Shown here: positions 5,050 through 63,459 of the stretch, piece after piece | How positions within the stretch are numbered: the stretch's first letter is position 1 | Layout: every line of letters starts with the position of its first letter | Origin: Octopus sinensis | Taxonomy: Eukaryota | Direction: 5' to 3' | Length of the DNA: 64,000 nt | Assembly (NCBI RefSeq): GCF_006345805.1 | Contig: NW_021831752.1 | Span: forward strand, 310,001-374,000 | Made by a program: the position numbers and the translations under genes | The notes under the pieces: model-generated | Seen by the model: the letters and a program-made list of their open reading frames with translations, nothing else | Told to the model about the DNA's origin: nothing | Databases searched by the model: none

Positions 5050-6522
5050 TTAAAGAGATTCGACTGTTTCTCGAATGATCATTGTAGCATCCAATAATTC
5101 ATCCTCAGTGATAGTTAAAGCTGGAGCAAATCGTATTCTGTCATGGTGAGTTGATTTAGTTAATAGGCCATTACAACTCGTCAGCACTGTATTCTATACG
5201 TTAGGGTCGATAAATCTACCTTTTTTAATCACAATTCCGTTAAAAAGACCTTTCCCTCTAACATCCTGAACGTATTTTGAGTCAATTTTATTCATTTCTC
5301 GTCTGAAAATCTGTCCAAGATATTCAGATTTCTCAGCCAATTTTTCTTCCTCAATAACCTAATTAAATGCTATTTCTAAACTGACCTTCAACGCCTCCAT
5401 TGCGACCCGAGATGCGAGTGGGTTGCCTCCATAAGTCGATCCGTGAGTTCCCGGATTCATTGTCAGCATCACTTCATCGTCGGCCAACACACAGGAAACC
5501 TACAAATCACATTTTATAAAAACAGGCAAAAGTCCACCAGAGAGTGCCTTCCCTAGAATAACCATATCTGGTCGCACATTCTCATGGTCAATACAAAGAC
5601 GCCTAATTCGGTTTAAAACGTCAAAAGAACTTTCCAGTTCTTGCTAAGCCAGTTTGGACCTCGTCTGCTATAAACAGAACATTGTTTCGTTTGGTTATTT
5701 CCCTGACTCCTTTGAGATACCCCTCCTGAGGAACCACAATTCCGGCCTCCCCCTGAATTGGCTCCACCATAAAGGCGCAGACGTTTTTGTCTTGGCATGC
5801 TTTCTGCCATTTTAAGAATAAAAGACCTCGAGACTCTCCAAATCATCGTAAGGGATCATCAAAACTCCCGGAAGGTAAGGACCGTAGTCTTCATAGCACG
5901 AAGGGTCACTCGATGAGGAAACAGCCGACATGGTCCGTCCCCAAAAATTGTTTTGAGCGTATATAATTTTCGCTTCATTTTGAGGAATTTTTTTGACTTT
6001 GTAACCCCATTTTTTGGCCAATTTGCAAGCAGTCTCACCGCCTTCTACGCCTGCACAGTTTTGTCACTTTTAGAGTTAATACCCGAGTTCATCGGCAGAA
6101 CTTTGTCATATCCGAATAGATTTGTAATATATTTAGCATATTGTATAAACACGTCATTATGGAACGCACGTGAGGACAATGTGAGTTTGCTGGCTTGGTC
6201 TACCAATGCTGCCACAATCCGAGGATGGCAGTGCCCTTGATTCATCGAGCTATAGCCACACAGAAAATCGTAATATTTCTTCCCAAAAGTGTCCCATACA
6301 TAGCATCCTAAATAGCATTTTTGACTAAAATAAAATGCCTTCTCCTCGCTGAATAACAACCGGTTGTGGAACATAATTGTGGGCACTGTATTTAAAGGCA
6401 GTTTCTATCGCCGTGGTGTCTTCCTTATACGGAAGGCCCTTCATGATAGAAGCTGCTGTAATAAACGTCACAATTATTATACAGGAACTTAATCTTCGAA
6501 ATAGGGGAATATTTTTCAACAT
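5050..6522 (-). CDS. OAT: Ornithine aminotransferase, mitochondrial, multi-exon
   Basis: [73 protein letters not shown]; introns 6456-6482 (27 nt) and 6308-6338 (31 nt, GC-AG). Confidence 0.93.
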
Positions 6523-7165
6523 TTTACTGACTTGATATCGTAATCCAGGTTAATAAGCGTAATGGGTTGCCGATAATCGGAAATTCGATAAATATTTAAT
6601 CATTAAGCATAATTTAAGAAATATTTTTATTTTTAGGTCATAAAAAATAATTTAATCTAAAAAATAAACTTTGTCGAAATGAAATCTGAACTGTAAAAAT
6701 ACAAAAATTATATTTTAATGAGATTTCTGGTTATTAAAATGATTAATTATTGTGGTAATGTCGGTTGGGTGTGGCTGATGACGAGTCATAATTTTTATCA
6801 AGTTAAAATTTTTTAAATGTCTAACAACCCCTAAACTTTAATAAAATTTTGATAATTGTCTTAAGAGACGTCATTTGGGATGAAAGTGGATAAAATAAAT
6901 TGGACATTACATAGGCCAGCTTTAACACGTTTCATAAATTGCCAAAAATTATTAATTTTTGGCTTTCTGGGTGTGCCATATTTTATAAAAAGATGTCTGC
7001 TCGATTATCTAAAAGCTGATATGATTGCACAGGACACTCTCCAGGTAAAGACTTACTATGTAAAATAAACTCACATTAAATATGGTCATTTCTACATTAA
7101 ATATACCAGAATAAAGATGGAATGTAACAGAAGGAATAAAATCAAGTAAAAGAATAGAGGAAATG

Positions 7166-9330
7166 TCAATCGGCACTCCCAAGGAGGGAATACTGATAAG
7201 ACAGTGCCTCACTTAGTCCAGAACACATGGCATCGACATCAGTGATCTCAGATAACAAAAACGTGGTGATGGAGAATAAAATAAACTCGTCTTGAGGATT
7301 ATAGCAAATCCCGTATCCATTCTGACAGGCAGGACCAAACACGAGAACACCCTCTCCTGAAATGGGGACTTGACTGGTAGATATTCTGAAACGAAAATAG
7401 TCCCCAAATGCCTCATTCTCAAAAAATGAAGGCAAAGTGACCCCGTTTTCCATCCCAATCCATTTGAGAGCGCTTAAATGTCTGTCTGTCCCCTTTCCGG
7501 AAACAGCCTACCTCAATAAGAAAGACCAACCATAAGTGTGGCCTTGGAATGTGCGTTTATTGCAGTCTTTAGTTTTTCTCGATTCAAAGACCTCAATGTC
7601 CCTGCATTATCGACATCCTGAACAAAGGAACAGACTGCGTCAGTGCATCCTCGAATATTGTCAGTCCTCCCTTTCCTGAATTTCCGAGTGGCCCCCGATT
7701 CATAGGTTGCCGTGAAATGCCGGTGGAGCCTGTTTGATCACGGAAACCAGAAACCGGTAATATGCCAACTGGAATGCCACCTGAATGAACGCATCGGGAG
7801 AGATCTTTAAAGATTTGATCAAATTTTTCCCGAATTTGTCAAATTTGAGATATCGACAACCCACGTTGTTTATTTTTCTAAAAATCGTTTTTGAAGTACT
7901 TTTGAATGTGCAAAAACGCGGAATCAATATCGTTCTCCATTTCTTCGTCGACGGACCAATTCAACTTTTTTGGATTTGATCCAAATTGGCGGGAATATTC
8001 CATCACCCCATCGAGTGGGGATCTAAAAAATGATTAAAAAAACCACGTTTTCGGGTCGTGGATGAATTGAGCCAGTTTAGCCAAGGCCACCCCTTCGGCA
8101 GGGGTATGTTCGTAGGTCATTCCGTAGTACCCGTCCTCGAGTTTGTAAACGAGCTGCAGAGTCTTGTCAAACCATCTATTTGCGGTGTGTGTCCCATGTC
8201 CGTGCAACATGTGGGCAAGAACTGAGCTTTTAGTACTTTTTGTGTCATTTTCTTTATTATTATTTATATCTATCACATTTATTTTATTAGTAATTTAAAT
8301 ATATTAAATTATTTAAATTATCTACCTGGTGTGTCTATGCACAGAATACATATGCAGTCCAATATAGTACAAATATTCGCTACATTTAAAGAATCTAGAA
8401 AAAAATAATCAAATTTCCTAATAAAATACGCTGGTAAAGTTTGGTAAAACATCTGGCCCATTTATCCCGAGTCCAACTAGTGAGAATACCCATTTTAGGC
8501 TCAGCAACAGACACATCACAATTATCCAACAAATGCTGTATCTGTGTCTGCAAGACATCCACACTCAACGGCAGACCATCCCCATCATACAAATCAAACC
8601 GATAGAACTAGGATAAGTCAATTTAGACAGACCCCGTTTTTATAGGCAATCACAATGTGCTGAGAATTCTTTATGTGGATTTGGTCTTGGTGTGGCAGAG
8701 GTACTCGGTAGACTCCAAGGATGTTATAATACTGATGCATACATAGTTTATTCGATCCAACATATTCGGTAGGAAATTTACCCCTATTTATTAATTACCA
8801 CAAATTAATTATTTATATAATTAAAAGAATATAATAAATAAAATAAATAATAATGATGTGGTGTGGGACACAAAAAATTGACAGTCAGCGTGAATAATTA
8901 CCAACCTTTCAAGCATTTCCTTGTAGTGAATCACTGCATTGAGAATATGTGCAATAGTCCTAGCGATTTAGTGACATTATAAACTCTGAGTGTGATTTGT
9001 CCTCTTTTTTCTGTCCAAGAAAGATCCCAGGACTGGTGGTGATAACAACTGAATCCCTCGTTTTCAAATAACCATATTTTAGCCAAAAATCAGAAATCTT
9101 TAATAATTTGGACAAAAAACCCAATTTTCTTTATCTTCACCAAGTTTGATGAGCATATTTTGCATTTCATAAATGTTTTGTCCCTTCATCATGTCTTCAG
9201 CGTCTTTATTAGCCTGATTGAAGTGTGCTGTACTGCTGATTCTCTTGACTTCTTCGAGATATGTACTGACAGTGTCATTTAGGTTAGGAATTGGGAGTTT
9301 AGGGAGGGTTTGTTTAGTTGAGTATTTCAT
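7166..9330 (-). CDS. CRAT: Carnitine O-acetyltransferase (choline/carnitine acyltransferase family), multi-exon
   Basis: LPKLPIPNL, NRWFDKTLQ, YEHTPAEG (catalytic His), SPDAFIQVAFQLAYYR, GKGTDRHL, ISTSQV, FGPACQNGYGICYNP. Confidence 0.88.
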
Positions 9331-9789
9331 GGATATGCCTTTCTGTTATGATTAATAGATAATTTACCAAAACATCGGAAAATTTGGCTATAAAATGTGG
9401 TCTGCAGCGAATTGAAAACATTATGCGTAAACCCACCCCACCTAACTGGTTATCCTATATTTATTTTACTTGTCTTTTTATTATTCGAATATGTCTCTTT
9501 ATTCGAATTTAGACAAGTAATAGAAACTCGTCCAAAGAGTTTTTAATAACATTCATTTATTAAGGTCAGATTGCCTTCTCTTTGTAGTTTAACTTTTTAT
9601 CTTTATAGTCACCCAGTGCTATCTCTTTTTAGTCTAGTTGAGTAATCCACATCATTAGAGTGGCAGTCTATTCGGAAATTCATTTACTAGTTCAATCTGC
9701 AACAAGTTTACAAAAAAGACGAATATTATATTTTATTGACAACTGCATTATAATTGCATTACAACAATGAATTAATAGACCGATATTAA

Positions 9790-10260
9790 TTCGAAGGCGT
9801 AGTTTACTCTTCTGGAAGATTAACTTGGGGATAAAACATCGAAGGACCACAAACTAGTTAATCTGTATGTTCTTATGGATGGTTCAAAGTATTGACGATA
9901 AATGTTCGCCAATCCGGATAAACTTTTCAGCACGTTTGTAGTCTGTTCACATTTCCGAGAAAGAGAAAGAAAGTGTGTAGAAAGTGTGGAGAGAAAGAGA
10001 GATGCATGTCCAGAGTCACTCCTAGGACTGGCTACTTGTGTTAAAAGGCATGCCCACATTGTTCACTGTCGTTCTTTCCAATCTTTTATTAGATGTAAAA
10101 AAGACGTAGCGTTCACAACGAGCTGGTTATCAGTTAAACAAACGCTAAGCCGATCCAGATTAGCTTGGAGCTTTTCAGAGCCTTCTGGATGTCTCGGTCC
10201 CGTGAAGTCAATACGAGTCATCGGGATAAAATAAAGAGGGATACTCCATTAGGCAAAAGA
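9790..10260 (-). mobile_element. Highly degenerate non-LTR reverse transcriptase remnant (jockey/I-like)
   Basis: Across frameshifts: YPDD..LVLTS, LQANLDRLSVCLTDNQLVVN, VLGVTLDMHLSFSPH; resembles the element at 56494-58148. Confidence 0.5.
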
Positions 10261-10416
10261 CGGAGACTTTACCCCCTTTCGTCCACTTAGGAATCTTAGA
10301 ACACAATCCTTGGATTTTTATCACAAAAAAGAAATTCTTTTAATTATATAATAATTAGTGAATAATTAAGAGAATATAATTAGAGCGCTTTCAAGTCAGT
10401 CTTGTGGAATATCAAA

Positions 10417-13176
<2,760 letters not shown>

Positions 13177-13272
13177 CTTTTCTACTTAATTATATGGTTG
13201 ATTTTTTGATTTATTAATTTTTGTTTTTTAATAAATTTTTGAATTTATATTTCTTGTGGTTGTTTACATTGG

Positions 13273-17644: not shown

Positions 17645-19165
17645 CAGTACCGCTCAAATGTTTCGGACCACCCTATTTTTCTCAATTTCCAAGTCAATCC
17701 TAAATTATTTTTATACGGTTCTTTAGAGAAACTTATTAGATAAGCTTAAACACATTTATTCTATTTTAAAAACTTGGACAGATATTCATGTTTGGCGCAA
17801 TTTTAAAATTATCGATTTTATACTCGATCATATGTTCCGGACCAGTTTAAAAAAAACCGAAAATTTATTAAACTTATAAAAAGTTAATAATTAATATTTC
17901 CTCCGTTGTTCGTTATAACAGCATTTATTCGCTCTGGAAGTGAATTGTATAATTTTTCAATGTACGAATTATCAATCTCGTACCAAATTTTTTTGGTCAA
18001 ATTCCAGAGCTCTGGAAGATCTTTTGGTTCCAGATCATAAAGTTTTTGTTTTAGTACCGACCACATATTTTCAATAATATTCAGTTCGGGTGACTGGCTC
18101 GGCCAAGTTTCTAAGATTTTAATTTGTTTCCTTTGAAAAAAATTCATTGTCGACATGGACCGATGGGAAGGAGCGCCGTCTTGCTGGAGATACATGGTCT
18201 CATCATAAAAATTTTCGAGTCCAACATTTATAATTCTCTGATACTCTGCGGAATCAACATTTTTAATGCATAAGACAATGTTTCTCCATCCATTTGCAGC
18301 AATAGCTCCCCAGACCATAATGCTAGGAGAAAATTTTCGTGTTTTTAAACAATATTTTGAGTCAAATCTAGAGTTTGGTGGCCTTCTAACATAATTTTTT
18401 GTGTTTGAATGCAAATTTATTTTGCATTCATCACTAAAAATAATTTTACCCCAATCATTTTGGCTCCAAGTTAATTTCTCAATGCACCAATTTTTTCTAG
18501 CCTTTTTATGGCATATGGAAAGACTTGGTTTTGGGCATTGCTTTCGCCCATTCAAATTATTTCTTTGTAGGCATCTTTTAATTGTATTTGTGCTTACAAT
18601 AGAATTTAATTTCATATCAAATTTAATTTGATTTGCCGTTTTTGTGGGGTCTGCTTTCGAAATTCTCACTAATTTGCGTTCAGATCTTGGGGATAACAAT
18701 CTCGGTCGACCAGATTTGGGTCTGTCGGAATATAGTCCAACGGATGAATATCTGGAAATTGTTCTTTGAACAGCAGTTTTGGATATTTTTAATTTTTCGG
18801 CAATTTCTCTTTGTGAAGCTCCATCTTTAAAAAAAGTGATGATAGCGACCCGATCAACCAGTGAAACACGCGGCATTTGTTATTTATTAGTCTTTTGTTT
18901 TTAATTGAATCAAAAATTATTTAAATTTAAAGAGATTTAACTGGTTCGAAACATATGATTGCAACTGGTCCGGAACATATGATCGAGTCAAAAATCAATT
19001 ATATTCAATTGGCGCCAAACAAAAATATTTAAAGAAAATTTTAGAATAGAATAAATGTATTTAAGCTTATCTAATAAGTTTCTCTAAAGAACCGTATAAA
19101 AATAATTTAGGATTGACTTGGAAATTGAGAAAAATAGGGTGGTCCGAAACATTTGAGCGGTACTG
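17645..19165 (-). mobile_element. Full-length Tc1-family DNA transposon with long IR/DR-type TIRs and TA TSD
   Basis: Termini cagtaccgctcaaatgtttcggacc / ggtccgaaacatttgagcggtactg; near-identical TIRs over more than 100 bp with inner catatgttccggaccagtt repeats; TA at 17643-17644 and 19166-19167. Confidence 0.96.
17884..18876 (-). CDS. Intact Tc1 transposase, 330 aa, DD35E spacing
   Basis: Paired-like HTH, GRPR, FSDE, QQDGA..WPSQSPELNIIENMW; 35 residues between second D and E. Confidence 0.93.
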   Translation of the reverse strand: MPRVSLVDRVAIITFFKDGASQREIAEKLKISKTAVQRTISRYSSVGLYSDRPKSGRPRLLSPRSERKLVRISKADPTKTANQIKFDMKLNSIVSTNTIKRCLQRNNLNGRKQCPKPSLSICHKKARKNWCIEKLTWSQNDWGKIIFSDECKINLHSNTKNYVRRPPNSRFDSKYCLKTRKFSPSIMVWGAIAANGWRNIVLCIKNVDSAEYQRIINVGLENFYDETMYLQQDGAPSHRSMSTMNFFQRKQIKILETWPSQSPELNIIENMWSVLKQKLYDLEPKDLPELWNLTKKIWYEIDNSYIEKLYNSLPERINAVITNNGGNINY

Positions 19166-19762: not shown

Positions 19763-21608
19763 TAGGGCAACCAAAAAATTGCACTTTTTAATAAAAAAAA
19801 TTGCAAAAATGAATTTTAAAAATTGTAAAAAATTGCAAAAATAATTTTTTTTAATTGTAAACATTACATTATGCAAAAAATTAACGAAATTATTTATTGT
19901 AATAGGAAATCAAATATTCCTGAACATTTTCAGGTTTAAAGTTCCTCTCTTTACTAAGAATTTTCGTCAAAAGAGATATTGCCCTTTCGATAGATGCTGA
20001 ACTTGCGCTACATTTTCTGAGATGTGAATAAACTTCTGGCGATAGATTCTTATTTGAGAATTCAAGAATACTTAGTATTCCTGATTTCTCAAGCTTTTTT
20101 GATATATAGGATTTTATGTCGCATGGACCTGATGTAAAGTCTAGGGTGTTTAGATCACCATAAGCTGTTGCAATGGAGTAATCAAGCAATTCAGTATTTG
20201 AAATCATTTCAATTAATCCCAAATAATTTGAACTGATTTGGGTTAAGCTTGGAAACAACGTAGGATTATTCACTGATTTTTTTGCCTAAAATAATTAAAA
20301 ACTAAAACATTTTGTATTAAAACTCCATCTCCTTCAAATTCAGATACGATTTTAATAATTTCTGGAAGATTCTGGGAGTAATATTTTGCTGCTTTTAGCC
20401 AGCTTCCCCATCTTGTAACCACAACTTCGGGTGGATTTCCGATTCGTGAAAACATCTCCAAACGTCTCTTGTTTTTGACTGTGGCAGCCTTTATAGACGA
20501 AATCAATTCATCAACATCTGCGAAGTATGCCTTAATCTTTAGAGCACAGTTGTGCAATAAATGTGACACGCAAGTCACGTGGAAAAGATTTTGGTATATC
20601 AATTTCATTGATGCCCCAGCTAAAATTAAATTTATTTATATATACCACTGGTCATATATCTCGCCCCATCTGTAACGAATAATATAAAATTTTCACGTTC
20701 AATAGAAAATTTCTTTATTACTTTGTCCACCTCAACACAAATTGTTGAAGTAGTAGGCGGATAATATAGATTGGTACACGATACTAAATGAAGATTTTTT
20801 GGAGTGGAGATTTTCCCAATCAAAGTAATTAAAAAACGAGTTCCATTGATTTGGGCTTCATCACAAACAAAAAAAACACATTCCCCACTATTGAATAACT
20901 TAAAAAAAACAACAGTAAATGAGTCTGAATGGTATTAATTTTATATTTTGATATTTCTTTAACATTTAACCTGCAAGATGATTCAGATGGCAAAGGATAT
21001 GTTTCCTGCTCAAAAAGCCGTATGAGGGAAGAATGTCTGATTTTATAAATTGGTATGTTTGCCTCCAAAAACGCTTGTGTTACTTTGATCCCCCAATCCT
21101 TTCGAGTATCCGTTATCGCCGAAAGAAATGTTTGTGAACTCTGAGATGAATTTGTCCATTCTATAAATTTAAATTCAAAGAAATACTGTGTGCTTTTAAA
21201 TGTTTTTTTGAAGAACGGTGCGCATCAACAAAAAATTTTGTGTCACACCGTACAACAGTTGAGCAATTGGAGCAAAATAAATTCCCTTCACTGTCAATAA
21301 CAAACTCGGGGAATTTCTTTGCATAAAATGAAATTTTCTGTGACACTGTCCTTTTACCCATTACAACAAACAACTAAAACACGTTTTAATAATCTTTTAC
21401 TTATAATTATATTATTTTTAATAAAAAAATTTTTTTTTAATTTAAAAAATTGCAAAAAATTGTAAAATGACTACAAAAAATTGCAAAAAATTGCAAATTT
21501 AAATCGAATAAAAATATAATTAAAATTAATGTCTATTCATTACTTTATTATTTATCGAATTTTAATTAAATTATATTTAATTGCAAAAAATTGCAATTGG
21601 TTGCCCTA
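19763..21608 (-). mobile_element. hAT-superfamily transposon (BED/CGGBP1-like N-terminus), transposase frameshifted
   Basis: 12-bp TIR tagggcaaccaa; exact 8-bp TSD cttattac at 19755-19762 and 21609-21616; subterminal aaaaattgc repeats; LFCSNC..H...KKH, VTDGARYM, CVSHLLHN, TRWGSWL, SASIER. Confidence 0.92.
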
Positions 21609-26843: not shown

Positions 26844-28103
<1,260 letters not shown>

Positions 28104-36493: not shown

Positions 36494-37009
36494 CTAAAGC
36501 AAGTCATCGCAAAGTTCATGAAGAGCACAATTGTAAGTCTACAAGTGACAAATTAGCCCATACTTTCGACAGATTGGCATCCTTGGTGAACGTATGGAAA
36601 CTGGAGGCATAGATCATGTTGGACTCGGCAGTGCAGGCTGCAAATAAGTGGCAAATATGAATACAGTCAGCCCTCACATAAATGGCCACAAGCGGGTAGG
36701 AAACTCGCAGTTCGTCGTGTCGTTTTTTGTAGGAATAAATGACATATCGTGGCTCACAACTGGGAATGGAGTCCCCAATATCCTCTAAATCAACTCCCTA
36801 GCAGTCAATTAATAATGCTTCCTCTTAATTATATAATTAGTACATTAAGCTGCTTTTCTAATTCAATCGTCATCTTTTCCTGATTTATTGCAACTAGGAC
36901 TTAATGTTATGTCAGAACAGATTAATGCTTCTGAGTTGACGAATTTCTTTTTTCTTAATTCTTCGATTGACTTTAATGTTTCTTTTGTGGGTACAGCCAT
37001 CCCATCCAT
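36494..37009 (-). CDS. GMF: Glia maturation factor (ADF-H family), multi-exon; largely missed by the ORF track
   Basis: Spliced: ALIFAINQEKMTIELEKQLNGVDLEDIGDSIPSCEPRYVIYSYKKRHDELRVSYPL..NMIYASS; introns of about 25 and 46 nt. Confidence 0.88.
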
Positions 37010-37155
37010 TTTCAAATCCACACTACACCTACTTAACTGTGACCTCAATAGCCTTTTGTATCTATTTAAAAAATAGTTTACCTTAATAAAAATATTAAAA
37101 TATATAACAATAAAATAATATTAAAAAATATTTTAATCTTCATACAATTTATAAC

Positions 37156-39591
37156 CCCTGTGGAAAGTGTCAAGTTGCTCCATGCTTTTCTTTGATGCTC
37201 CCCAAGTACCTGCGTTGTACATGAGGACAGGTCGAACAAATGCATCATATAATCGTAGACGCATCTTAGTCGAAATTTGTTTTTTTCTCATCCATATAGA
37301 TTGGAGTTTTTTAAGTGCAATTGTTGATAGTATTTTTCGTCTGGTAAATAATATCTTCAGAATCGCCAAGAAGAGATCCGAGTTTTCGGACGTTTCGCCA
37401 CTTCTCATCTATGCGAGTTGGCATACGTTCGACGGTGGTTATTTCGGTTTTCTCTTCGTTGACTTTGAGTGACCATTTATCGAGAATTGTTTTTGCTTTC
37501 TCCATAATAATTTTTATTAATTTCGAATTCTCCGTAATAAAGTCAAGATCATCCTCGTATATGAGTTTCACAACTTGGTTGTCCATATATCCAATTTCTG
37601 CTCTTAAGTTTCTCAGAGCTGCCTCCAGATAGACGATAAATAATATAGGCGATAGTGTGTCCCCTTGTGGGGTTCCAAAATTTGTAGGAAATAGTCTAGA
37701 TTCTTTAGGGCCAATTCTGACAAAAAGTTGAGTTTCCGATAATAGCATATGTATCATGCGTAGACTGTCTTCATCTATAATGTTCTTTAACACGATAAGT
37801 AGTTTGCTCCTGTTGATGCTATCAAAAGCTTTGCTCATGTCGATTCCCAGGACATGAAAGGATCGTTTATACTTCTGACATATTGCATTGATCCAGCGAT
37901 GGGTCCAAACAATATTGGCCGTGGATCTTCCAGGTCTGAAGCCACTCTGACTGCAAGAGAGATAACGATCGACTGATCTTGATATTTGGCTTCGAACAAT
38001 AGTCGATAGAGTTTTCCTTAGAGAGGTGACTAATACAACCGGTCTCAGGCTTCCACAGGGTCCCCGTCGTTTGCCTGGTTTCTGGACGGGTATTATTATT
38101 CCTGTCCCAATTGGAAGTGGGCAGTGTTGGGCAAACGCTTGTTCAGTATATGTGCGAAAAAGCTCGCTAGACTGTTGGGAGCGTATTTGAGTAGTTCCCT
38201 GGACTCTCCATCATATCCTGCAGCTCTGTTATTGTTCATACGGTGAAATGCTTCCAGGACCTCCGAGGGTGTTATTTCGTTCAGTAAGCCTCGCGGATGA
38301 CCAATGAATGTGGGTGTATAAGTGTCATCTGTTTGGAATTGTCTCTTGAAGTGGTCTGCGATTCGTGATGCTTTATCTTCATCGTCCAATATCATGTGTT
38401 CTGACTCATCCCATACCGATATTTTGGTATTTCGTGAGCCTCGATTAAGTAATCGGGTGGCCATGAATATCTGGTTCCCAGGTAGGAGTCTTTCAATTTC
38501 AGTAACTTTATCATCTAAGTATTTCATCCATAGTAGGCGTCCCCTGTCTCTAATTTCATGAAGGAGCCTGTTCCGTTTATTCTTTAGCTCTTTTTTTGGT
38601 TTCCATACCACAGTTTTCGATTCTCAGACGGATGTCTCTTTGTTGTTCTGACATCTCTCTCAGTTTTGAGTCATGGTATGTGTAATTGTTTGAGCGGTTA
38701 CTCCTGTATCCGACACTATCCTCCGCGGCTTGTTTAATTTTCTCAAATACTTCTTTTAGGAGAACGTCTGGTCTCTTTTCTGTATTTAGTTGTGTTATGA
38801 ATTGTTCGATATTATCTTGATATTTCCTCCGTTTCGTGGTATTGTTAATCAATTCCTCCGTAGCGAGCCTTCTTTGTTTTGTATTGGCTGTATAGTTCAT
38901 GGCTATGTTGCCAAGTATTTTTTGCATACGTATCCGAGCTACTGTTATTCTGTGGTCGCTATTTGTAGCGGTGCCTCCGTAAGAGCGTGAGTCTATGAGA
39001 GAGTCCTTGTGTGTATTCTGACATAGTATATAATCTATTTGATTATATATTGTGATCTCCTCCCCGCTTCGGTCTTTCCTATAGCCGGTCCACGTCGTCT
39101 TATGCCTGGCAGGATGTTGAAAGGTCGTATTGCAGAGATAGAGATCAAGGGGTCACTTTCCACAGGGGTCAACTGAGAAAACTCCTCGGCTATTCGTGGC
39201 CGAAGAAAATATCAATGATAAATTATACAGGTTAGCTAACTGTGGGCCTATAAGTCTAAATGTACTTGAAACCCGCTGGCGCTTGTTTGGACATATTTTA
39301 CGAATGAAAAAAGAACACCTTGCAATATGGTCATGGAAGAATTTTTCGACCATACTGAATACTCTAAATATAGAGGACGCCCAAGAGACTGTCTCCCGGG
39401 AATACTCACGAAGGAATATGCTATGATCGGAGGCCGATTGATGGATGCAAACAATCTGGACGAAATCAGAAAGAGGGCAAGACGAAGGAAGGGATGGAAG
39501 GAACTAACGACAAGAATAGTTAAAAACATTGCACAAGCGAAACCATAAACTTTGTTTACTGGCAACGCGAACGTGCATTAACTAACTAACT
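37156..39591. mobile_element. RTE-like LINE, 5'-truncated with 5' inversion (37156-39153 on minus, 39154-39591 on plus)
   Basis: End of APE plus RT on minus (GIDMSKAFD, PQGDTLSP, YEDD) up to FHRG; continues FHRGQLRKLL..RWRLFGHILRM on plus; (taac)3 tail; 10-bp TSD aatttataac at 37146-37155 and 39592-39601. Confidence 0.92.
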
Positions 39592-42755: not shown

Positions 42756-45250
42756 ATGGCAACTGTGACTGAAAACAAATCCAAATCCGGGACATCTCGT
42801 CCGAGTACTTCTGGAAATAAGGGTAAATCCAAACCAGCCCCTCCAACGGGTCCAGGAAGCAAAATAAAGTAATCATTCTGTGATTGTAGCGTAGAGCACT
42901 GCCCCCCGCATTGGCAGTTCACATTAAACATGCCACTGAGGGTAAAAGACGTGTTTTCATTAAATACGCCTCTCAAAAAATAAAAGCAATCCCCCCAGAA
43001 ATACTAAAAAACGAAGAGGCTGGGAATCTTTTTTAACCCCCAGGTTTGCGACTACGCCACAGAACTGGACATTTCAAACAACAAATTCAAAAAAATACCA
43101 AAAGACATAAACTCGTTGTATACAATGCAAAAAATAGACGCCAAATACAATCAGTTGGGGGCGATCCCTGGGACCCTATTTCGTCTCAAGGAGTTGCGAC
43201 AAGTCGACTTGTCCTCCAATTTGATTAAAAAAATCCCGCCAACACTCCCCAAAGCCACTGGATTGCTCGATTTTGATTTAAGGGAAAATAAAATCAGAGC
43301 TCTTCCTGCAGCCATCAACAAAGCCAAATCCATCCTTCGCTTTGACGTCTCGAATAACATTATCAAGACATTCCGTAAACAAGCATATGAACTAACGGGG
43401 TCACTTGACATTTCACGGAATCGTCTCAACGGACTTCCTCCAATCGGAGCAAAGCAAAAGGCGACGTTGAAAAAACTGGATGCTTCATACAACACCATTT
43501 CTAAACTTCCTCAGACGATTGACCGAGTCTCCTTTCTACGTCGACTGGACCTCTCAAACAACAACATCACCCATGTCCCCGAATCCTTCGGAAATCTGCG
43601 TTATTTGAACTATTTAGACATGTCAAATAACGACATTGAAGAGATTCCGAATTCAATTTGTCAGCTGAAATATAACCTTGTTGAATTATACTTGTCTAAC
43701 AACAAAATTTCAAAATTCCCCAAAGATATCGACGAATACAAAAAATTACGAGTCCTTGATTTGTCAGCAAACCAACTGGTCAAAATACCTCGGAAATTTG
43801 CCATGAACCAGTCAATAAAACACGTGAATCTCTCAAAAAACCAACTGGAGGACATTTCCCCAGTCACTGATTCTCTCTTAATCCACTTTCTGGACATTTC
43901 AGAGAACTGCATCCCGGAAATACCCGAAACAATCAAAAACCTGGTTTACTTGGAAACACTGCTGGCCTCGCACAACCAAATAAGGTGAGAAAAGTAAGTT
44001 GTACTGCAGAGAACTCCCAGATGAGCTACAACAACTCAGTCGGCTTAACAAACTGAATATCGCCCACAACCAGATTGAGGCACTACCCGAAAACCTGGGA
44101 CATCTTCAACTGATAAATTATCTGGACATTAGCAATAATCCAATCACCAGACTCTCCGAAAATATTTTTAACGTTGGAGGACTGTTTCTAGTTTAGATCA
44201 AGTCCCTCGAATACTTTTATCTCAACAACCTTGAATTACAAGTCATTCCAAAGTCGATTCAGTCATTTTCCAATTTGAGGGATTTTCATTTGTGCAATAA
44301 CAAAGTGGAAACGTGCCACATTCCACAAAATGTCAAAAGTCTAAAAATATCACACAACCCATTAAAGTGAACTTGGACAGTCAAATTTCCAGGTCTGTCT
44401 CCGATGATCCCCGGAACTCATTTTTCACTTTATTGAACAAACGTGAGTTGTTTGTGTCCCTAACCGTCCTGGAACTGGTCAGCCTAAACATGGACGAACT
44501 CCCAAAGGCCATTCCCAACCTCCGACTGTTGGAAGAACTGTACTTTGACGACAACAACGTGACACAATTCCCGGAGGTTGACAGTTAAAATAATTCCCAG
44601 AACTTTGATAAATTACAAATGATGCGGATTCTCTGCGCTTCGAAGAACAAACTCTGTTTTTTGCCATCAAATATGCACAAACTGAGGAATTTGGAGAAAC
44701 TCGATTTGTCACAAAATTCTTTAACCAAATTTGACGAGAGTCTGACCACTTTTGAATATTTGGAATATCTCGACCTATCGGAAAATGAAATCCAGAGTTT
44801 ACCACAGACGTTTGGTTCTCTCAAATTGTTGACATATTTAAATCTATCAAAAAATAACATCGAATCCTTCCCAAGTGAGGATATCCAAATTCTCGGCTCA
44901 GTCAAAAAATTGGACATTTCTGAAAACAGAATTGGAGAGTTGCCAGCAAATCTTCCTTACCTTTACCGAATGGTCGAGTTGAGGGCTTCTTTCAACTATT
45001 TGGAAGGCCTGCCTCCAGCAATTAATTTGATGAAGGGACTTGAAATTTTGCTGGTCGACGAGAATTATATTGTCACCCTCTCAGAAAACATCTGCAAGAC
45101 TCCGAATTTAAAAATCCTCGACGTTTCGAACAACAAAATAAAGCAGTGGCCCAAAGCCTTTGAAAATTTGAAAAAGAAATGCAATTGTATCACCGGCCAT
45201 CAGACTTCCAATAAACGTAAAAGCACTAGTCCCAAGGAACCTTCGAATAA
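42756..45250 (+). CDS. Large leucine-rich-repeat protein (more than 20 LxxLxLxxNxL repeats), multi-exon
   Basis: Continuous typical LRRs such as LRRLDLSNNNITHVPESFGNL; 24-26 nt introns; no other domain recognised. Confidence 0.88.
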
Positions 45251-45297
45251 TTAATTAATCATTAATTGCTAACATTAATAAATATAATTAATAAATT

Positions 45298-50030: not shown

Positions 50031-51300
50031 TCACAACAATGACTTTTGACATCTCAGTTCGGATATAAAAAACCACAGTAATGACCTTTGACATCTCAGT
50101 TCGGATATTAGAAACACAGTAATGACCTTTGACATCTCAGTTCGGATATTAAAAACCACAGTAATGACCTTGAATCTCAGTTCGGATATTAGAAACCACA
50201 GTAATGACTTTTGACATCTCAGTTCGGATATTAAAAACCACAGTAATGACTTTTGACATCTCAGTTCGGATATTAGAAACCACAGTAATGACCTTTGACA
50301 TCTCAGTTCGGATATTAAAAACACAGTAATGACCTTTGACATCTCAGTTCGGATATTAGAAACCACAGTAATGACCTTTGACATCTCAGTTCGGATATTA
50401 AAAACCACAGTAATGACCTTTGACATCTCAGTTCGGATATCGTAAAGAAAGAAAAAAGTAAGCAATTGGGTGGCTAAGGGAATTGTCGAGGGCCTGAGGG
50501 TCAGCTCAACGATGCCGCGCTGCGTATTGAGTGGCAGTTTCCGCGGAGCACAGCAACCGAGATTCGCTGGAACAGCCAGCTCGTCTCCCTCCGGTCGTTT
50601 GTTTTTGTGGAGATTTTTCTACCAATGGCGGTGAGGAGTTGAGTCGCAGCCTTTCCGACGATTCCAGAGTTTCGAAGGCGAGGGGGGCAAACTCAAAAGC
50701 GTCCGAAATACACCGGTATTTCGTCATCTTTGTCTCTTCAGCCAGCGCACTGGCGGAACCCGGGTTTGCGACAGTCCTGGGAAGCATTGTCGCCGAAAAA
50801 GAGTCGACACACGTGGCATCCCAAACCAGGGACTTGCCTTCCCTAAAAGGAAAGGTCGTCATCCCGTCGGGACGCTTGCCGTCGCTCCGGGAAAGGCCGA
50901 CTGGCTCTAGGGTGGAAGGGAAACCAGCCGACTCTAGAGCCCTCCTCACAACGTCATTCAGATGAGTGTGACGGGGAATTCTCCCGGCACTCTTCCCAGT
51001 TCGGATATTAGAAACCACAATAATGACGTTTGACATCTCAGTTCTGATATTAGAAACCACAGTAATGACCTTGACATCTCAGTTCGGATATTAGAAACAA
51101 CAATAATGATACAAAATCCGAAAAATACCAGGGCTTGTTAGACGGCTGACGTTTGACATCTCAGTTCGGATATTAGAAACAACAATAATGATGTTTGACA
51201 TCTCAGTTCGAATATTGGAAACCACAATAATGACGTTTGACGTCTCAGTCCGGATATTAGAAACCACAACAATGACTTTTGACGTCTCAGTCCGGATATT
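50031..51300. repeat. 42-bp minisatellite (about 17 copies) interrupted by a CRE insertion
   Basis: Unit gacatctcagttcggatattagaaaccacagtaatgaccttt; 10 copies left of the insertion and about 7 right of it. Confidence 0.95.
50441..50996 (-). mobile_element. CRE-clade 3' fragment inserted in the minisatellite
   Basis: SAGRIPRH, DGKRPDG, WDATCVDS, FAPLAFET; 12-bp duplication cagttcggatat at 50429-50440 and 50997-51008. Confidence 0.85.
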
Positions 51301-56405: not shown

Positions 56406-56493
56406 AACAACAAATCACTATAATCAAATATAATATTTAAAATTTAAAATCAATTAATTAAAAAATTTGATTCAGGAATTATTGGTTGATGTG

Positions 56494-58148
56494 GTGAGCA
56501 CGTGGACAGACCCAAGAGATAACCGGAATCGGATCAGACTACTGAATAAAGTCATAAAACAGTCTGCAAAGGACAAACGGTACTGGAGGGCTGAAAAGTT
56601 CGCCAGAAGATTAAATGCGGAGGTCCCACTAACAAAAGTATGGGCATTTTAAAAAGATTCACAAACCCGGAGAGATTTAAATCGGGTGAGGATAATGCGG
56701 CTCTCTTCATCAACAAATTGATAAAGTTGTACGCTGGGATCAGTAACATCCCGCACAGGAAATATGATGGACTACGTTTGAAGTTGTTGAAACCTTGAAG
56801 ATGTCGGGACTTGATAATCCTCACCCATGACGAGGTGTCTCAGGCTATCAGAAATTTAAGAAGCACTGGCTCTTGTGGACCTGATGGAATTCCTACTATT
56901 CTGGTAAAAAACCTAGGACAGGTGGCAATATCAGCTCTTTGTCAAATTTACAACTTTTCTATAAACAACATTGTGGAAAATGGCACACATTCGTCCTATT
57001 CTGAAACCAGGGAGACCAAAAGACAACCCATATCTCTCCTCTGTGTCCTATCCAAAGTTCTGGAAAAATTTATTCTCAACCACATCAAACAATATCTCCC
57101 GGATTTGGATTTTCAACATGGATTTAAATGTGATAAATCAACCACTTTGACGAACTTCATCTCATGTGGACTATCTGCCAAATCGTATAACTTAAAAACA
57201 GTTATGTGCCCAGTGGATATCCATAAGGATTTTTACTCCGTTTCCAGGAAAATACTGACCAGGAAAATATACAGTGAATTTCACCCAAAGCTGAAAAAGT
57301 GGCTAGCTAACTTCCTCAGCGGCCGAAGAGGTAGGATTCAACAAAACAATACAAGATCGATGTCACGATATTTTCCAAACTGAGTCCCTCAAGGCTCAGC
57401 CCTTTCGTCAGCTCTTTTTAACTTATTCTTATTGGACCTTCCGCTGCCAAACGACAAACACTCAATCTGAGTCGTGAGGTTAACACGGCAAGTTCAAAAC
57501 TGTACTATTTCCACAATCTCGAAAGTTGGCTTTCGATAGATCGACGAGTCCTGAAAAATCAGTCACTACGCTTCTGACTTCAGCAAGGAAATTTGGGGAA
57601 ATGGTGGTGAACTTATATCTAAACAACATGGAAATCCCTTTTAAAAAATCCCAGAAAATCCTCGGCGTGACATGAGATAGTCATATGTGTTTCTCCCAAC
57701 AATTTGAAAATGTTACTACTAGCTGCATGAAGAAACTGAACATTTTAAAAGTGTTCCTCCGAAAATGCAAATATTGGATCACAGCATCCCCACACGCCAA
57801 TCAATCTACCGGCAATACATCGAACCCTTCATTAGTTATGCTTGTGGGGCGTTGGGAGGGTTAGTCAGTGAAACGAACCGTGAAAAAATCGAAAAAACTC
57901 AAGAAAGATTTCGGGAAGCACTACAAAGACAGAATTAACATCTATCCATCCCCTCATTCAAAGAAATCCTGGGATTCAAAGAAAGCATGGGCCTACAGGT
58001 CCCAAAACTCCACCAACGCGCCCTCATAGAAATTGTGTCGGGACTAGGGTGCAGCACCGGGCAAAGATGAGAACCCTCCTCAGAGAAGCCGGGATCACCT
58101 GATTAACTAGTTCTATGTTTTGGACGGTGATCTTGGTTCTAATAATAA
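56494..58148 (+). mobile_element. Degenerate jockey/I-like LINE with (TAA)n tail, flanked by a 34-35 bp direct repeat
   Basis: GSCGPDGI, PISLLCVLSKVLEK, QHGFK, VPQGSALS; repeat at 56459-56493 and 58149-58183 (1 mismatch). Confidence 0.8.
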
Positions 58149-58268
58149 TAAAAAATTTGATTCAGGAATAATTGGTTGATGTGATACCTCCCACCTCCCA
58201 ATTCTAATAGACGGAAAAACCTACAAAAAAACAAATGCAGGCCAAAAGAACTCAAAGAATAATAAAAA

Positions 58269-59246
58269 TCACTCAGCAACAGTAATTTGGTCAAGTTTTT
58301 TAGTAACAGCGTGGGCAATCATCTCCGAAATATAATCACTGATAATCTCACTAATCTAAAACAACTCAAATAAAACAGAAAACAGCAAATTCCGCAGAAA
58401 TATCGTAAGCCATGTCAACCGCAGTGTCAAAAACAGGCATTTTATGTCTAGTAAGTGCAATAATGCAATTCCGAACTCGGGCAATGTCACTAAATTGTTC
58501 AGAAACAATCTAAAAATAAGCAAAAGCACAAACAGCAGAGTTTTCCTGAGCAGGAAACAGCCAAATATTGCCGTTATTACCAAAAACGACACTCACAGCA
58601 CATGTGAGAGTACAAAAGTGTGATTTACAGCGTCTAACCAAAGAAGGGGATATTTTGACCAACACTCCCAGATGGAGCTTCCATTAGTGGAGAAAGCCAA
58701 CCTTGCCATATCTGTTACTCCGTGAGTGTAGTTGGATACAGCCGTCGGTGGGGACTGTCCGCACTTCCGCACTGATTAGGTCACCTTCGTTGAGGTACGT
58801 CTTCATCAGTTTTTCGTCCTCAAAAGACTTAATTCTCTACTCACTAAGCAAGCAGGCAATCACCGAGTCCCCACTGGGCAGAATCACTGCCGACAGTGGC
58901 AGGATTGCGTCTTGACGGGAATTTATGTTGACTCTCCACTTCCTGAGGCCCACCCCGACGATTCGACCGACAACCACGTCCCCCACTTCCCCCATGTATC
59001 TGGTCTTTAGTGGGATGACTCGGGCTAGTTGATTCACGTAGTTCACTACTCCAGCAATTGTGGCCTTTATTTCGCCCTTGTTGTCTCGGACTGTGCCGTG
59101 GCCACTTTTGGTTAGTTTGGTTGTTTATACTGCATGTACATTGGGTTGGTCACGATTGTGTCTCCGGGCACTACTATTCCACTCACACTGCTTTCTGTTT
59201 TTTCTTTTTTGGTTCTATTTTTTAATGAATAGATAATCGTGGACAT
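58269..59246 (-). CDS. EXOSC2: Exosome complex component RRP4, multi-exon
   Basis: VVPGDTI, GHGT, PLKTRYMGEVGDVVVGRI, WRVNINS, YLNEGDLISAEV, VFGNNGNIW. Confidence 0.92.
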
Positions 59247-59398
59247 GCCACACAAACTACTCGATATATTAAATTTATTTAATAATAAATAAATCATCAC
59301 TTAATCTCAATAAATAATATTCCTCAACTTTAAATTAGTCATAAATAGAGGGTCGGCTTCCCTATTGAAAAAAACAAATTGATATAAATGTTTAAATT

Positions 59399-61344
59399 TT
59401 TTTTTTGGAAGATTAAAAAATATATTAAGAGTATGAGAAATCGTCAAAAAAAACTAGCTATTATGTACTGGCTCGCAGGATTGAAAGACAATTCCCGCGT
59501 AAAACAGCCTGCGAGATCCTCTGAATAAGGAATATAAATTCCCTCGGATCTCTGGAGCGGTAGGTGCACAGGCGGCCAAGTTTCTTGAGATGAGCAAGCG
59601 TCTTGGCCCCAAAAACACAGGAAGTTTCGACGGCAATTGCCCAAAAGCAAAATCGATCGCGTAAATCGTCGTATTTCGTTAGTTTTGTGAATTCGGCCAT
59701 CTCAGCCGACGAACCGGGTCGACAAGCCGTAGCATTTAAGGCACCCTTGGCGAAAGAGTCAGAACAGGTGACGTCCCACACGAGCTGCTTCCCGGATTCA
59801 AAAGCGAAAAGCGTACAGCCGTCTGGACGTTTTGCATCTTCAAGAACAAGGCCCGTCGGTTCCAGAATAGAGGGGAAACCAGCTCTTTCCAGAGCTTTGT
59901 GAATTAGATTGTTGATTTCGGTGTGCCGAGGGAATCGGCCGGGGCTCATTCGACAAGACAGAGGATGTAACCCAAAGGCGTCAACTTTATCTCCACAACG
60001 ACATGGGTGAGGTCTGCAGACAGGGAGTTCAAGGCGATTACAGATACCCAAGCGGAGTGAATCCCTATCGAGGACAGTACATTCAGCCAGGAGCCTGAGT
60101 ATGGCTGACAGGCGGAACGGAAACAAGCCAGTCTGTGTTGGTCGAGGAGTGGTTCCAAGTCAGTTGAAGATCGACGGCAAAGAATTTTGTCCCAGTCTCG
60201 CTGAGAAAAGACATCGGAAGGGACTTCAGAGAAATTGCGTTTCCAAAGAGCAAGGGCCGAATCAATATCCGAGTCCAACGATGATTCAGTAGTTTTTTCC
60301 AGAATTTTTTGGACAAGAAGATATAATCCAGACGCCGAAGAAAGAAAGGCAGGAAGGGCCAAATCAATACTGGAACGGAGGCCCCGTGACTCACAGGAAG
60401 TTTAGCCTGACACCAGGCAATATCGTCGAAATGCACATTGATAATTTTCTCCGCAGACCTCCGAACCAATGAATCATAAGATTCCAGCACTTGTGTGGCA
60501 TAAAAACAAGGTGAGCTCCTCAGTATATAAACGATTTTTGGGATCAAAAGATAGTTCTTGAAAATGTAGAATGAAGGATGAGGATCAATGGCAGAAAGTT
60601 TTTCACAAAGAGATGCTATAAGATTTTTTTTGGCAAGGAGGATTCGTGTAGCTGAGTCGGCGAGAATCGGTGACCCCAGAATTTCCAGATCAGACAGAGG
60701 TGTCTGTCTCAACTCAGGAAGGAGTCCGCAAAAAAGAGAGAAGGAGTTCTTAAACAGGGATGGCTCAACAGAGAGATTGACAATCTCGGACTTGCTGGAA
60801 TTAATAACCAGACCAATGTCGGATAAAGCCGGAATTAGACTGGCTAAGTCCTTTAGCAAAACATCAGGCGGACCGCCAAGGGTGCAATCGTCGAGATACC
60901 AAAGATTAAGGGGTGATTCGTTAACGCGGGCAATGGCATCCACGGCAAGAGCGAACAGTAATGGGCCCAAAGGATCCCCCTGTTGGACGCCACAGGACGA
61001 AGAAATGAAAGAACCACCGGCGATTAAAAGTGATGGAAGCGAGTACGAAAGCGATATAAAGGGAAGCAAGTGTGGAACACGGTCTTGGCAGACCTCCAAC
61101 ATATGACCACGGTCCAGAGAATTGAAAGCATTAGTTACATCCAGTTTCAATAAGGCAAGGGAAATATTGGAACGAGTAGAACCGTGAATAAAACAACGAC
61201 AGGCATGGACAGAAGACTCGCAACCGCCAGGAACACCCACACCCAACTGAATGGGCTGCAGTTGCTCGCCAATAGAAGGAATAACTGACTTACAACAGAC
61301 TTTCGCTTTGCCGCTTAGGAATAAATTGCACAAGTTAGTGCAAG
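59399..61344 (-). mobile_element. CRE-clade retrotransposon, largest copy (RT plus RLE), 5'-truncated, frameshifted
   Basis: QLGVGVPGGCE, LDVTNAFNS, GVQQGDPLGPLLF, WYLDD, KRPDG; poly-A; exact 12-bp TSD aatgtttaaatt at 59387-59398 and 61345-61356. Confidence 0.93.
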
Positions 61345-61418
61345 AATGTTTAAATTAGACAAAACTCAATCCGATAGAATAATTAACAAAGAACGGGAAA
61401 ATTGCGAAGAAATGTGAA

Positions 61419-62240
61419 CTAGTCATTGAGCAAAGGAAATGAATAATGAGAAATGCCCCCATCTCTACTCAGCATGGAAACGACGACAGAATCCCCAACT
61501 TCTATAAGTCGATGTGAAGCAGCTCTAAATATATTCTGACAACAGGCATTAATCTCATCAACACTCATATCCACATCTTCACTTCTGGTCACCTTTTCAG
61601 TACCAGAAATGTTGTGTTTGCCCACCTGAAATCCTCACTGACGGAATACCAGATTAGCCAAAAGAGGAGTCATAATAGCAGCCCCCATTCCACTGGCCGA
61701 GTAAATAACCTTTTCAATGCAGCCGACTGGGTCGTAGTCGTAGACACACGCACTTCCTGCCATCCAACCACCACCAACAACCTTCGTTGTCAAATCCGGC
61801 CACCACAGGGAAGGCGTAGTAAGGAAAGAACCTCTTGCTGTACAACTTCATGGCCAAACGATGGGAGAATGAATCACATGTTAAGGGCAGACTGGAGTCC
61901 TCGTCATATCTCTACCCAATTACTCACCACACAACCTCCACGATCAATTTCATCTCCTTGACCAAGGTGGTGGCATCCCCCTGATATCCACATGTGGTCA
62001 TTAGTATATTTTTATTACTATTTAGTCATTAAGGGCTATACATTTGGTGGTTTCTGTTCATTTCCCGAGAGAGAATTTGGTATCCGGACGTAAGACGAGT
62101 GTCAGATGCGAGTACAACGTAATTTTTGGTAGCAATACCAATGACTGAACTAACATGTTATTCACATGAGGAAAATACCCCCCGTTAAATTCGTAGGGGT
62201 TCCATTGCTCCTCTTTTGATGTCAAAATTGAACTTATCAT
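61419..62240 (-). CDS. PSMB1: Proteasome subunit beta type-1 (beta6), multi-exon
   Basis: WNPYEFNGG, VIGIATKNYVVLASDTRL, AASHRLIEVGD, C-terminal PLLND. Confidence 0.9.
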
Positions 62241-62417
62241 CACTAGAGCTATAACGTTCTATAATTATTATTTAAATTGCAAAAATGAATTTTATTGATA
62301 TATTAGATATAATTTGAATGCTTTTTAATATTTTACAGAAAATAAGTTTTTTAAACAATTTATTATAGGATCATACGTGGATTAAAAATGTCAAAAACAA
62401 TGTTATAAATAAATTGA

Positions 62418-63459
62418 TTATTGGAAATAGGAGATCAATGCGGTTATCACTGTGCCCAATATTAATCCGAATAATTCTATAGAAAAAAGAATTATTCCAA
62501 TTTTTGTAGAACTATTATCTTTAAGCAAACTGAGTCTGTTTTTTTTGACTTGTTGTGTCTGGGCAGTCAAATAATATGAGAACCATTCCATTAATCGAAA
62601 CGTTGAGAAATACTCCAGCAACAAAAGCCAGGCCCCAATTAAGTATTCCTGTAATATTCCCAAAAATAATCCCAACAAAGAACCCAAAATAAAAAAATGC
62701 TACTGAAATAAAATTGAGAATTAAAATCTTCTTTTTAGAAAACTCCATGCTCAGGAAAATAGAAATATCACCTAAATTGTAACGAAAAACACGTGCCAAT
62801 TTCGTGAGTAAATTCTTCAAAGAATATTATAATGCTTAAACTAAGACCAAATACAATGCTGGTCGAATAAGCAATGCTCAAAGAGAATCCGTCCATAAAT
62901 TTATGAATGCTGTCCCCAACAATCATAGAAACGACCAACGAGTTGTCAATTGGTTCTTGTTCCTTTTATACTTTAATAAGAATTACAAATTGAATCGGTT
63001 CTTGACATTTATAATTCGAATAAAAGTCGGAAATAGAACTGAATATATATATTAACAAGTTTCCGATCTGCATCACTATGCCTTTCCAAAGAATTGTTTT
63101 TTTAGGTTCGTCGATTGCGAAAATCTGCGACTTTAAGTGACAATCGGACAACCTCAGGTATCAAAAATAGGAGAGTGGCACTACTAGTCGCCCCAATAGA
63201 CAGTGTTATGAAAAACAGGAGCATATATTTGTATAATGAATATTTGCTTATAAACACAAATGAAATCCCGAAAGCAGATAATAACGAGAATACTAATAAA
63301 GTCAGCAGCCCACACATCCACACTGAATTTAAAATCATCAAAAATACCTAATCGTTTGCTTGGCAATTTATGGTTTGATGGATTTTCGTTGTTGGCGGGT
63401 GATTTGTTCAAAACCATGTGGCTGTTTATCCCAATGAACAGAAGGGGCAAGTAATACAT
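62418..63459 (-). CDS. ZIP (SLC39) LIV-1 subfamily metal transporter, ZIP8/ZIP14-like, multi-exon; 5' end uncertain
   Basis: LLFLIPE, MIVGDSIHKFMDG, FEEFTHEIG|D, AFVAGVFL; multiple TM segments. Confidence 0.82.

Follow-up and report, generated by a model that had tools for sequence, protein, structure and literature searches.

Probable GC-AG micro-introns in conserved genes of a presumed dicyemid contig filed under Octopus sinensis

Introduction

How strictly does an intron of about 25 nucleotides have to begin with GT? The question is raised by a 64,000-nucleotide stretch of DNA filed under Octopus sinensis (RefSeq contig NW_021831752.1, positions 310,001 to 374,000; hereafter the window), whose genes are broken up by introns of roughly this size. 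An earlier reading of the sequence alone (the original prediction) had placed five introns with GC instead of GT donors here, one each in the genes for OAT, a leucine-rich repeat (LRR) protein and a ZIP transporter and two in the gene for PDHB, and had ascribed them to relaxed or altered recognition of the 5' splice site. All five are present exactly where they had been predicted, and they are probably genuine U2-type spliceosomal GC-AG introns of the nuclear genome of a dicyemid, as far as a comparison of genomic DNA with conserved proteins can tell. GC-AG introns are already known, as are the weak splice signals of dicyemid micro-introns; a raised GC-AG share among micro-introns, with compensation on a reduced local consensus, has not been reported in the literature searched.

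Five introns with GC donors

Introns were placed with a self-written spliced protein-to-genome aligner (BLOSUM62 scoring, AG acceptor) that permitted every donor dinucleotide, and all five GC donors were picked by homology alone. They are listed below; here and throughout, a slash marks a splice boundary or the junction that splicing creates.

6308 to 6338, minus strand: OAT GC-AG intron, 31 nucleotides, phase 1, aag/GCATTT...TTTAG/gat, joining VVIQRGE-G/CYVWD (alignment to human OAT)
27067 to 27092, plus strand: PDHB GC-AG intron, 26 nucleotides, phase 0, aag/GCATTC...AATAG/atc, joining NGAYK/ITKGL (three PDHB references)
27156 to 27180, plus strand: PDHB GC-AG intron, 25 nucleotides, phase 0, gag/GCATAA...AATAG/atg, joining DTPITE/MGFTG (three PDHB references)
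43019 to 43043, plus strand: LRR GC-AG intron, 25 nucleotides, phase 0, gag/GCTGGG...CCCAG/gtt, joining IPPEILKNEE/VCDYATELDISNN (references P0265 and P0166)
62772 to 62796, minus strand: ZIP GC-AG intron, 25 nucleotides, phase 1, ttg/GCACGT...TTTAG/gtg, joining EEFTHEI-G/DISIFL (tardigrade ZIP14, P0121)

The OAT junction, QRGEg/CYVWD, aligns gap-free to ERGKGIYLWD of the human protein (1gbn_A), in a run that also placed five GT-AG introns. With no constraint on the donor, the two PDHB junctions read GAYK/ITKGL against GAYK/VSRGL and TPITE/MGF against TPITE/MGF, and the same alignment holds four further introns of 26 nucleotides, all GT-AG once a GT/TG slide at 27217-27242 has been resolved. 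In the ZIP transporter EEFTHEIgDISIFL is matched to EELPHELGDLAILL of the tardigrade protein, with no gap across the HE.GD motif. The LRR references came from a search of 1.8 billion representative proteins and are mutually unrelated homologues; the junction IPPEILKNEE/VCDY is gapless against both, facing IPDEVFLNEQ/VQQA in P0265 and LPEELYKNEE/LQNT in P0166. If the boundaries are moved by a single base, the introns read GG..TA, GG..CA, CA..GG or CT..GG, and GC-AG alone keeps both the G at +1 and the AG acceptor.

The first four introns had been said to run into in-frame stops if retained, and the one in ZIP to shift the frame. Stops do follow the donor after 11 nucleotides in OAT, 18 and 3 nucleotides in PDHB and 15 nucleotides in the LRR gene; retention in ZIP does more than shift the frame, for it too meets a stop, at +26, which is the first codon past the intron. 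All five would have to be removed for the conserved proteins to be made. Judged by the alignments, the OAT and PDHB introns are next to certain, the ZIP intron appears to be a strong candidate and the LRR intron a good one.

The two PDHB introns are neighbours, with an exon of 63 nucleotides between them, and all but one of the five GC-AG introns are found close to the 5' end of their gene, though such numbers are too small to judge. The PDHB intron at 27156-27180 contains ACTAAC 8 nucleotides from its 3' end.

Frequency of GC donors

The census drew on reference proteins for 11 genes (MCM4, CrAT, ECHS1, PSMB1, SLC6, RRP4, ZIP, OAT, PDHB, LRR and GMF), in which 57 introns were placed by homology: 52 are GT-AG, five are GC-AG and none is of any other type. 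This amounts to a GC-AG share of 8.8% (5/57; Clopper-Pearson 95% confidence interval 2.9-19.3%), and the binomial probability of finding five or more GC introns is 2.7e-4 at a rate of 1% and 5.7e-3 at a rate of 2%. Both figures in the original prediction, five of roughly 50 introns placed by eye and an animal norm of around 1%, agree with our count and with the literature. By published counts GC-AG introns make up 0.82% of human, 0.86% of mouse, 0.45% of fly and 0.37% of worm introns (PMC1557818), and across animals GT-AG accounts for 98.3% of introns and GC-AG for <1% (PMC7072748). The GC-AG frequency in the window is about ten times the model-animal rate.

Donor identity was also determined in a run in which all non-GT dinucleotides were treated equally, GT received a tie-breaking bonus and gap-free, well-aligned flanks were required. 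It returned 27 GT and four GC donors, and the remaining 14 dinucleotides were absent; the LRR site entered the census through the separate alignments to P0265 and P0166. Three odd calls (AG, GA and AT) all fell in poorly aligned stretches. When unconstrained, the aligner had inserted junk introns (AA, TG, AT and others) where the protein alignment was poor, and these disappeared after the filter on flank quality.

The introns are uniformly short, with a median of 25 nucleotides (n=57), 51 of the 57 between 22 and 29 nucleotides and a maximum of 56 nucleotides. Lengths divisible by three occur in 20 of the 57, without obvious depletion of this class; depletion of 3n introns is reportedly a feature of Paramecium. 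An SLC6 GT-AG intron of 27 nucleotides at 572-598 (plus strand) is in frame and free of stops, and its retention would add nine residues in a transmembrane region.

Source of the contig

The window is identical (0 mismatches) to VCDQ01001869.1:310001-374000 of assembly GCA_006345805.1, an accession that octopus genome papers cite, and the whole contig measures 390 kb. RefSeq proteins predicted on it, XP_036354712.1 (OAT-like) and XP_029654604.1 (LRRD1-like), carry the name '[Octopus sinensis]'. When the protein collections were searched for transcripts of the same species, RefSeq models of this contig were the sole yield. The window has a G+C content of about 38% and encodes metazoan housekeeping proteins: SLC6 transporter, cyclophilin, OAT, carnitine acyltransferase, MCM4, a RAD23-like protein, PDHB, GMF, short-chain dehydrogenase, LRR protein, enoyl-CoA hydratase, RRP4, proteasome beta-1 and ZIP transporter. 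LINE, Tc1/mariner and hAT-like open reading frames (ORFs) are scattered among these genes.

If the contig were octopus, its PDHB would be expected to be >90% identical to that of other Octopus species. The contig is judged not to be octopus because none of 5.8 billion database proteins exceeds 68% identity to this PDHB. Dicyemids are parasites of cephalopod renal sacs. Dicyemids and myxobolid myxozoans are the only animals from which introns of 25 nucleotides are known (PMC13644364); the median intron of Dicyema sp. is 27 bp (PMC6543705), and in D. japonicum G+C is 36.7%, repeats, rich in LINE ORF2 sequences, take up 49% of the genome and introns average 38 bp (PMC6736024). Since the contig is not octopus, carries 25-nucleotide introns, comes from a cephalopod host and resembles D. 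japonicum in G+C content and LINE load, it is very probably a contaminant from a dicyemid renal parasite, filed and annotated as Octopus sinensis. Parasite proteins (the XP_ models of the 390-kb contig) thus sit in the proteome of the host, which matters to anyone who uses that proteome.

Donor flanks and 5' splice-site recognition

The GT donors of the window carry little information. Among the 52, A occurs at -3 in 47% and at -2 in 53%, G at -1 in 53%, A at +3 in 45% and T at +5 and at +6 in 47% each, which adds up to about 1.25 bits outside the GT itself, with no position above 0.43 bit. The 3' side offers the AG and a preference for T or C at -3, and nothing else. The published 5' splice-site logo of D. 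japonicum is 'GTa' (PMC13644364, 2026), with which the low-information donors described here agree.

Against this background the GC donors are good ones. They have G at -1 in all five cases, AG at the exon end in four and A at +3 in four; the first two counts are as originally predicted. Exonic AG is found in four of five GC introns versus 13 of 52 GT introns (Fisher p=0.024). Scored on a profile of the local GT donors (positions -3 to -1 and +3 to +7, with +1 and +2 left out, and leave-one-out for the GT set), the GC donors fall at the 69th, 83rd, 92nd, 92nd and 96th percentiles (Mann-Whitney p=0.0024). Measured against the vertebrate consensus CAG/GTAAGT they match four or five of nine positions, no better than the local GT donors, and the strong AG/GCAAGT signature is missing as had been predicted, with the nuance that the ZIP donor GCACGT differs from GCAAGT at +4 only and is not far from the classical consensus. 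Elsewhere the flanks of GC-AG donors compensate for the mismatch at +2 (PMC1557818). Because the GC donors score high on the local profile and are enriched in exonic AG, this rule still operates here, scaled down to a weak local consensus. Of the two terms in the original prediction, relaxed recognition is borne out by the information content of the GT donors; the GC donors are not uncompensated, and on this point an altered mode of recognition loses ground.

We infer that the major spliceosome splices these introns out by intron definition and that their length is tightly constrained; the narrow length range fits either intron definition or length-based recognition, the latter having been part of the original proposal. 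The 5' splice site holds little information past G at +1 and T at +2: aAG is weakly preferred upstream of it, and A at +3 and T at +5 and +6 downstream. Intron length and the 3' region would supply much of the specificity. Since U1-type pairing carries such a small part of the signal, a change from T to C at +2 would be cheap and would be tolerated in 5-9% of introns, compared with <1% elsewhere, mainly where the flanks are above the genome average and exonic AG and A at +3 help. The persistence of flank compensation favours ordinary recognition of the flanks over a changed specificity for +2; it argues that no special component recognising a C at +2 is needed, and nothing in the data requires a variant U1. 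Position +2 is relaxed about tenfold while the compensation of the flanks persists, which suggests a recognition step that is weakened but ordinary, not a new one, and adds a quantitative point to the question of how animal introns of 25 nucleotides are recognised.

A bolder scheme, which we regard as a tentative possibility, would have the dicyemid 5' splice site set mainly by a ruler, that is, by a constant spacing to the branch or 3' site in an intron of about 25 nucleotides, together with G at +1 and the exonic G at -1. Position +2 would then be semi-neutral throughout the genome, with GT and GC freely interconverting, and changes in the U1 5' end, in U1-C/Luc7 or in the contacts of U6/Prp8 may accompany it. 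If true, the GT rule would be substantially relaxed towards GC in dicyemids, the first case of this kind in animals, and the group would offer a natural setting in which to study the minimal 5' splice site.

An altered machinery that accepts C at +2, be it a U1 isoform with a changed 5' end or changes in U6, U5, U1-C or Luc7, is unlikely. It would account for a GC-AG rate about ten times the animal norm (PMC1557818, PMC7072748), and it has a precedent in the variant U1 proposed alongside the non-canonical GA donors of Oikopleura and Eurytemora (PMC7072748). However, the GC donors are enriched for the very flanks that GT donors prefer, from the invariant G at -1 to the A at +3, as compensation by an ordinary machinery predicts, and GC is still a minority among donors.

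Several points weigh against the interpretation of weakened but ordinary splicing of genuine dicyemid introns. The five introns are known here from genomic DNA and homology, and the statistics on compensation have a sample of n=5. They are five events in one 64-kb window, which leaves the genome-wide rate uncertain (confidence interval 3-19%), and ORF logic alone, applied to a further eight gene regions, gave 39 GT and no GC donors, which at face value would bring the overall share to about 5%. The LRR and ZIP sites draw on more distant homologues than those in OAT and PDHB. The dicyemid assignment, finally, was made from the host (an octopus assembly), the size of the introns and the metazoan gene content.

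Alternatives with ordinary donors

Could the GC introns be artefacts of modelling, with the true transcripts using nearby GT donors or other exon structures? RefSeq offers such a model for the LRR gene: XP_029654604.1 (MPLR/VCDY...) has a GT-AG intron of about 100 nucleotides at roughly 42942-43043, with the classical donor agg/GTAAAA and the same 3' acceptor as the GC-AG intron, at the price of a conserved segment. In ZIP a GT-AG intron of 19 nucleotides (62772-62790) is formally possible. That GC introns can be invented was demonstrated by our own ORF-maximising dynamic programming (DP) with a length prior, which gave usable drafts yet misplaced two of eight PDHB introns and produced two false GC introns in GMF; compared with GMF-beta (1v6f), the pair is a single GT-AG intron, one of the few longer than 30 nucleotides.

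36798 to 36843, minus strand: GMF GT-AG intron, 46 nucleotides (placed against GMF-beta 1v6f)

The case is a caution for automated counts of GC-AG introns, since naive ORF maximisation splits a 46-nucleotide intron into false GC-AG micro-introns.

At the five sites themselves, an artefact of this kind is improbable. Models restricted to GT lose 36 BLOSUM units in OAT, where conserved residues around the junction are replaced, 86 in PDHB (two sites jointly), where the conserved N-terminal region is disrupted, 33 to 34 in the LRR gene, where the whole N-terminal exon is dropped, and 21 in ZIP, where the 19-nucleotide intron puts TC inside the HE.GD motif. Pfam scores of the GC model and the best GT model are 56.6 versus 47.8 bits for ZIP, 88.0 versus 75.8 for OAT and 85.9 versus 50.6 for PDHB, so that the cost ranges over 21-86 BLOSUM units and 9-35 Pfam bits. 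When GT-AG alternatives were enumerated explicitly, neither the two PDHB sites nor the LRR site had one that joined the frames free of stops; OAT and ZIP do have such alternatives, and all of them destroy the motif. The 19-nucleotide alternative in ZIP is shorter than each of the 57 placed introns, and that of about 100 nucleotides in the LRR gene is nearly twice the longest of them. Moreover, the 14 other non-GT dinucleotides were never chosen in well-aligned contexts.

Errors of assembly or polishing that converted GT to GC are more improbable still. In the long-read assembly that yielded this contig the parasite makes up a minor part, a setting that gives the idea some room and no direct evidence. 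Five T-to-C errors exactly at +2 among 57 such positions would be implausible at any realistic consensus error rate, and the adjoining coding sequence of the conserved genes is free of frameshifts and stops. The idea that the introns belong to the minor spliceosome can be dismissed on donor and branch motifs: three donors begin with GCAT, reminiscent of the U12-type GCATCCT motif (PMC1557818), and TTTTTTAAC lies close to the 3' end of the LRR intron, but GCATCC occurs in none of the five donors (GCATTT, GCATTC, GCATAA, GCTGGG and GCACGT), TTTTTTAAC is only a partial branch match in the intron with the least U12-like donor, and a TCCTTAAC-type branch site 10-15 nucleotides from the 3' end is absent from all five introns.

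Comparison with known systems

The introns of the window share with the U2-type GC-AG introns of animals and plants the GC start, the AG end, their location in ordinary protein-coding genes and donor flanks above the genome average that compensate for the +2 mismatch (PMC1557818). They differ in frequency, about 5-9% as opposed to 0.37-0.86% in worm, fly, mouse and human (PMC1557818), in being only 25-31 nucleotides long, and in that compensation acts on a weak aAG/GYa.tt, not on AG/GCAAGT. Close counterparts are also the ultra-short introns of dicyemids and myxobolids, with a published median of 26-27 nucleotides compared with 25 here (PMC13644364, PMC6543705); a 5' splice site close to 'GTa', a 3' splice site of 'AG', an abundance of LINEs and about 37-38% G+C are dicyemid-like as well (PMC13644364, PMC6736024). 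The published logos of these groups are drawn on GT and, as far as the papers are searchable, the GC-AG share is not reported.

Oikopleura dioica and Eurytemora affinis, with their GA-AG and GG-AG donors and a proposed variant U1 isoform, are likewise animals that depart from the GT rule in about 10% of their introns, and Oikopleura also has a compact genome with short introns (PMC7072748). Unlike in these species, where A or G occupies +2, only C replaces T in the window, and the flanks argue for ordinary recognition. The micro-introns of ciliates have a similarly narrow length range, which implies recognition across the intron, but their hosts are protists. In Paramecium they measure about 25 nucleotides and in Stentor 15-16 nucleotides (the latter cited in PMC13644364).

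Gene models and annotation

The four genes with GC-AG introns were modelled as follows.

5101 to 6549, minus strand: OAT gene, one GC-AG and six GT-AG introns (homology model)
6051-6082, 5804-5826, 5603-5630, 5500-5523, 5359-5385 and 5187-5219, minus strand: OAT GT-AG introns
26959 to 28103, plus strand: PDHB gene, two GC-AG and four GT-AG introns (27217-27242, 27306-27331, 27761-27786 and 27929-27954)
42759 to 45251, plus strand: LRR gene, one GC-AG and five GT-AG introns (homology model)
42869-42894, 43985-44009, 44173-44196, 44367-44392 and 44577-44600, plus strand: LRR GT-AG introns
62421 to 63564, minus strand: ZIP transporter gene, one GC-AG intron and one homology-supported GT-AG intron (62963-62986)
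63323-63347, 63125-63149 and 62559-62583, minus strand: further ZIP GT-AG introns (ORF logic only)

The RefSeq models of the contig provide an independent view. OAT XP_036354712.1 contains QRGEGCYVWD, which is the product of the GC-AG junction, and then reads into the 23-nucleotide intron at 5804-5826 (minus strand), where it ends with ...ESLEVFYS. The LRR gene is split into models of 382 and 211 amino acids, with a conserved exon skipped. Overall, RefSeq models on the contig place introns of 30-32 nucleotides, the GC-AG one included, and fail at shorter ones; the OAT model, which keeps a 31-nucleotide GC-AG intron and stops in one of 23 nucleotides, suggests that the pipeline handled introns of at least 30 nucleotides and not shorter ones. 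If a GC-AG share of 5-9% holds genome-wide, gene predictors for dicyemids, and probably for myxobolids, must allow both GC donors and introns of <30 nucleotides. Without such changes a sizeable share of genes will be truncated, as the OAT and LRR models of this contig exemplify.

In the region of the OAT presequence, 6440-6480 (minus strand) holds an extra GT intron with tandem acceptors (...ACAG/CAG/) and a length of 27 or 30 nucleotides; RefSeq uses the 30-nucleotide form (RRLSSSSIMKG).

Gene finding without homology was of limited use in the window. A brute-force search for short introns that join ORFs was swamped by random ORF pairs, and a DP gene finder based on codon usage had too little power of discrimination, codon bias being low. 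GC calls from ORFs alone upstream of the PSMB1 start, in the unconserved tail of SLC6 and in a doubtful region at 3.1-5.1 kb were artefactual or unverifiable and were left uncounted.

Other features of the window

An Rfam scan of the window gave no family matches, and thus no small nuclear RNA gene, and no transfer RNA genes were found in the 64 kb. Transposable-element ORFs lie at 17887-18879 (minus strand), 19893-21224 (minus), 37136-39152 (minus), 56458-58100 (plus) and 59464-61354 (minus). They comprise a seemingly intact Tc1/mariner transposase of 331 amino acids, hAT-like ORFs and several LINE reverse transcriptases, and are consistent with the repeat-rich, LINE-rich genome of D. japonicum; one LINE separates the 5' part of RRP4 from the expected position of its 3' part. 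A 42-bp tandem repeat forms two arrays, at 50038-50440 (9.7 copies) and 50997-51300 (7.3 copies), which flank a region with a reverse transcriptase-like ORF and translate into repetitive '...NIRTEMSKVITVV...' ORFs on both strands.

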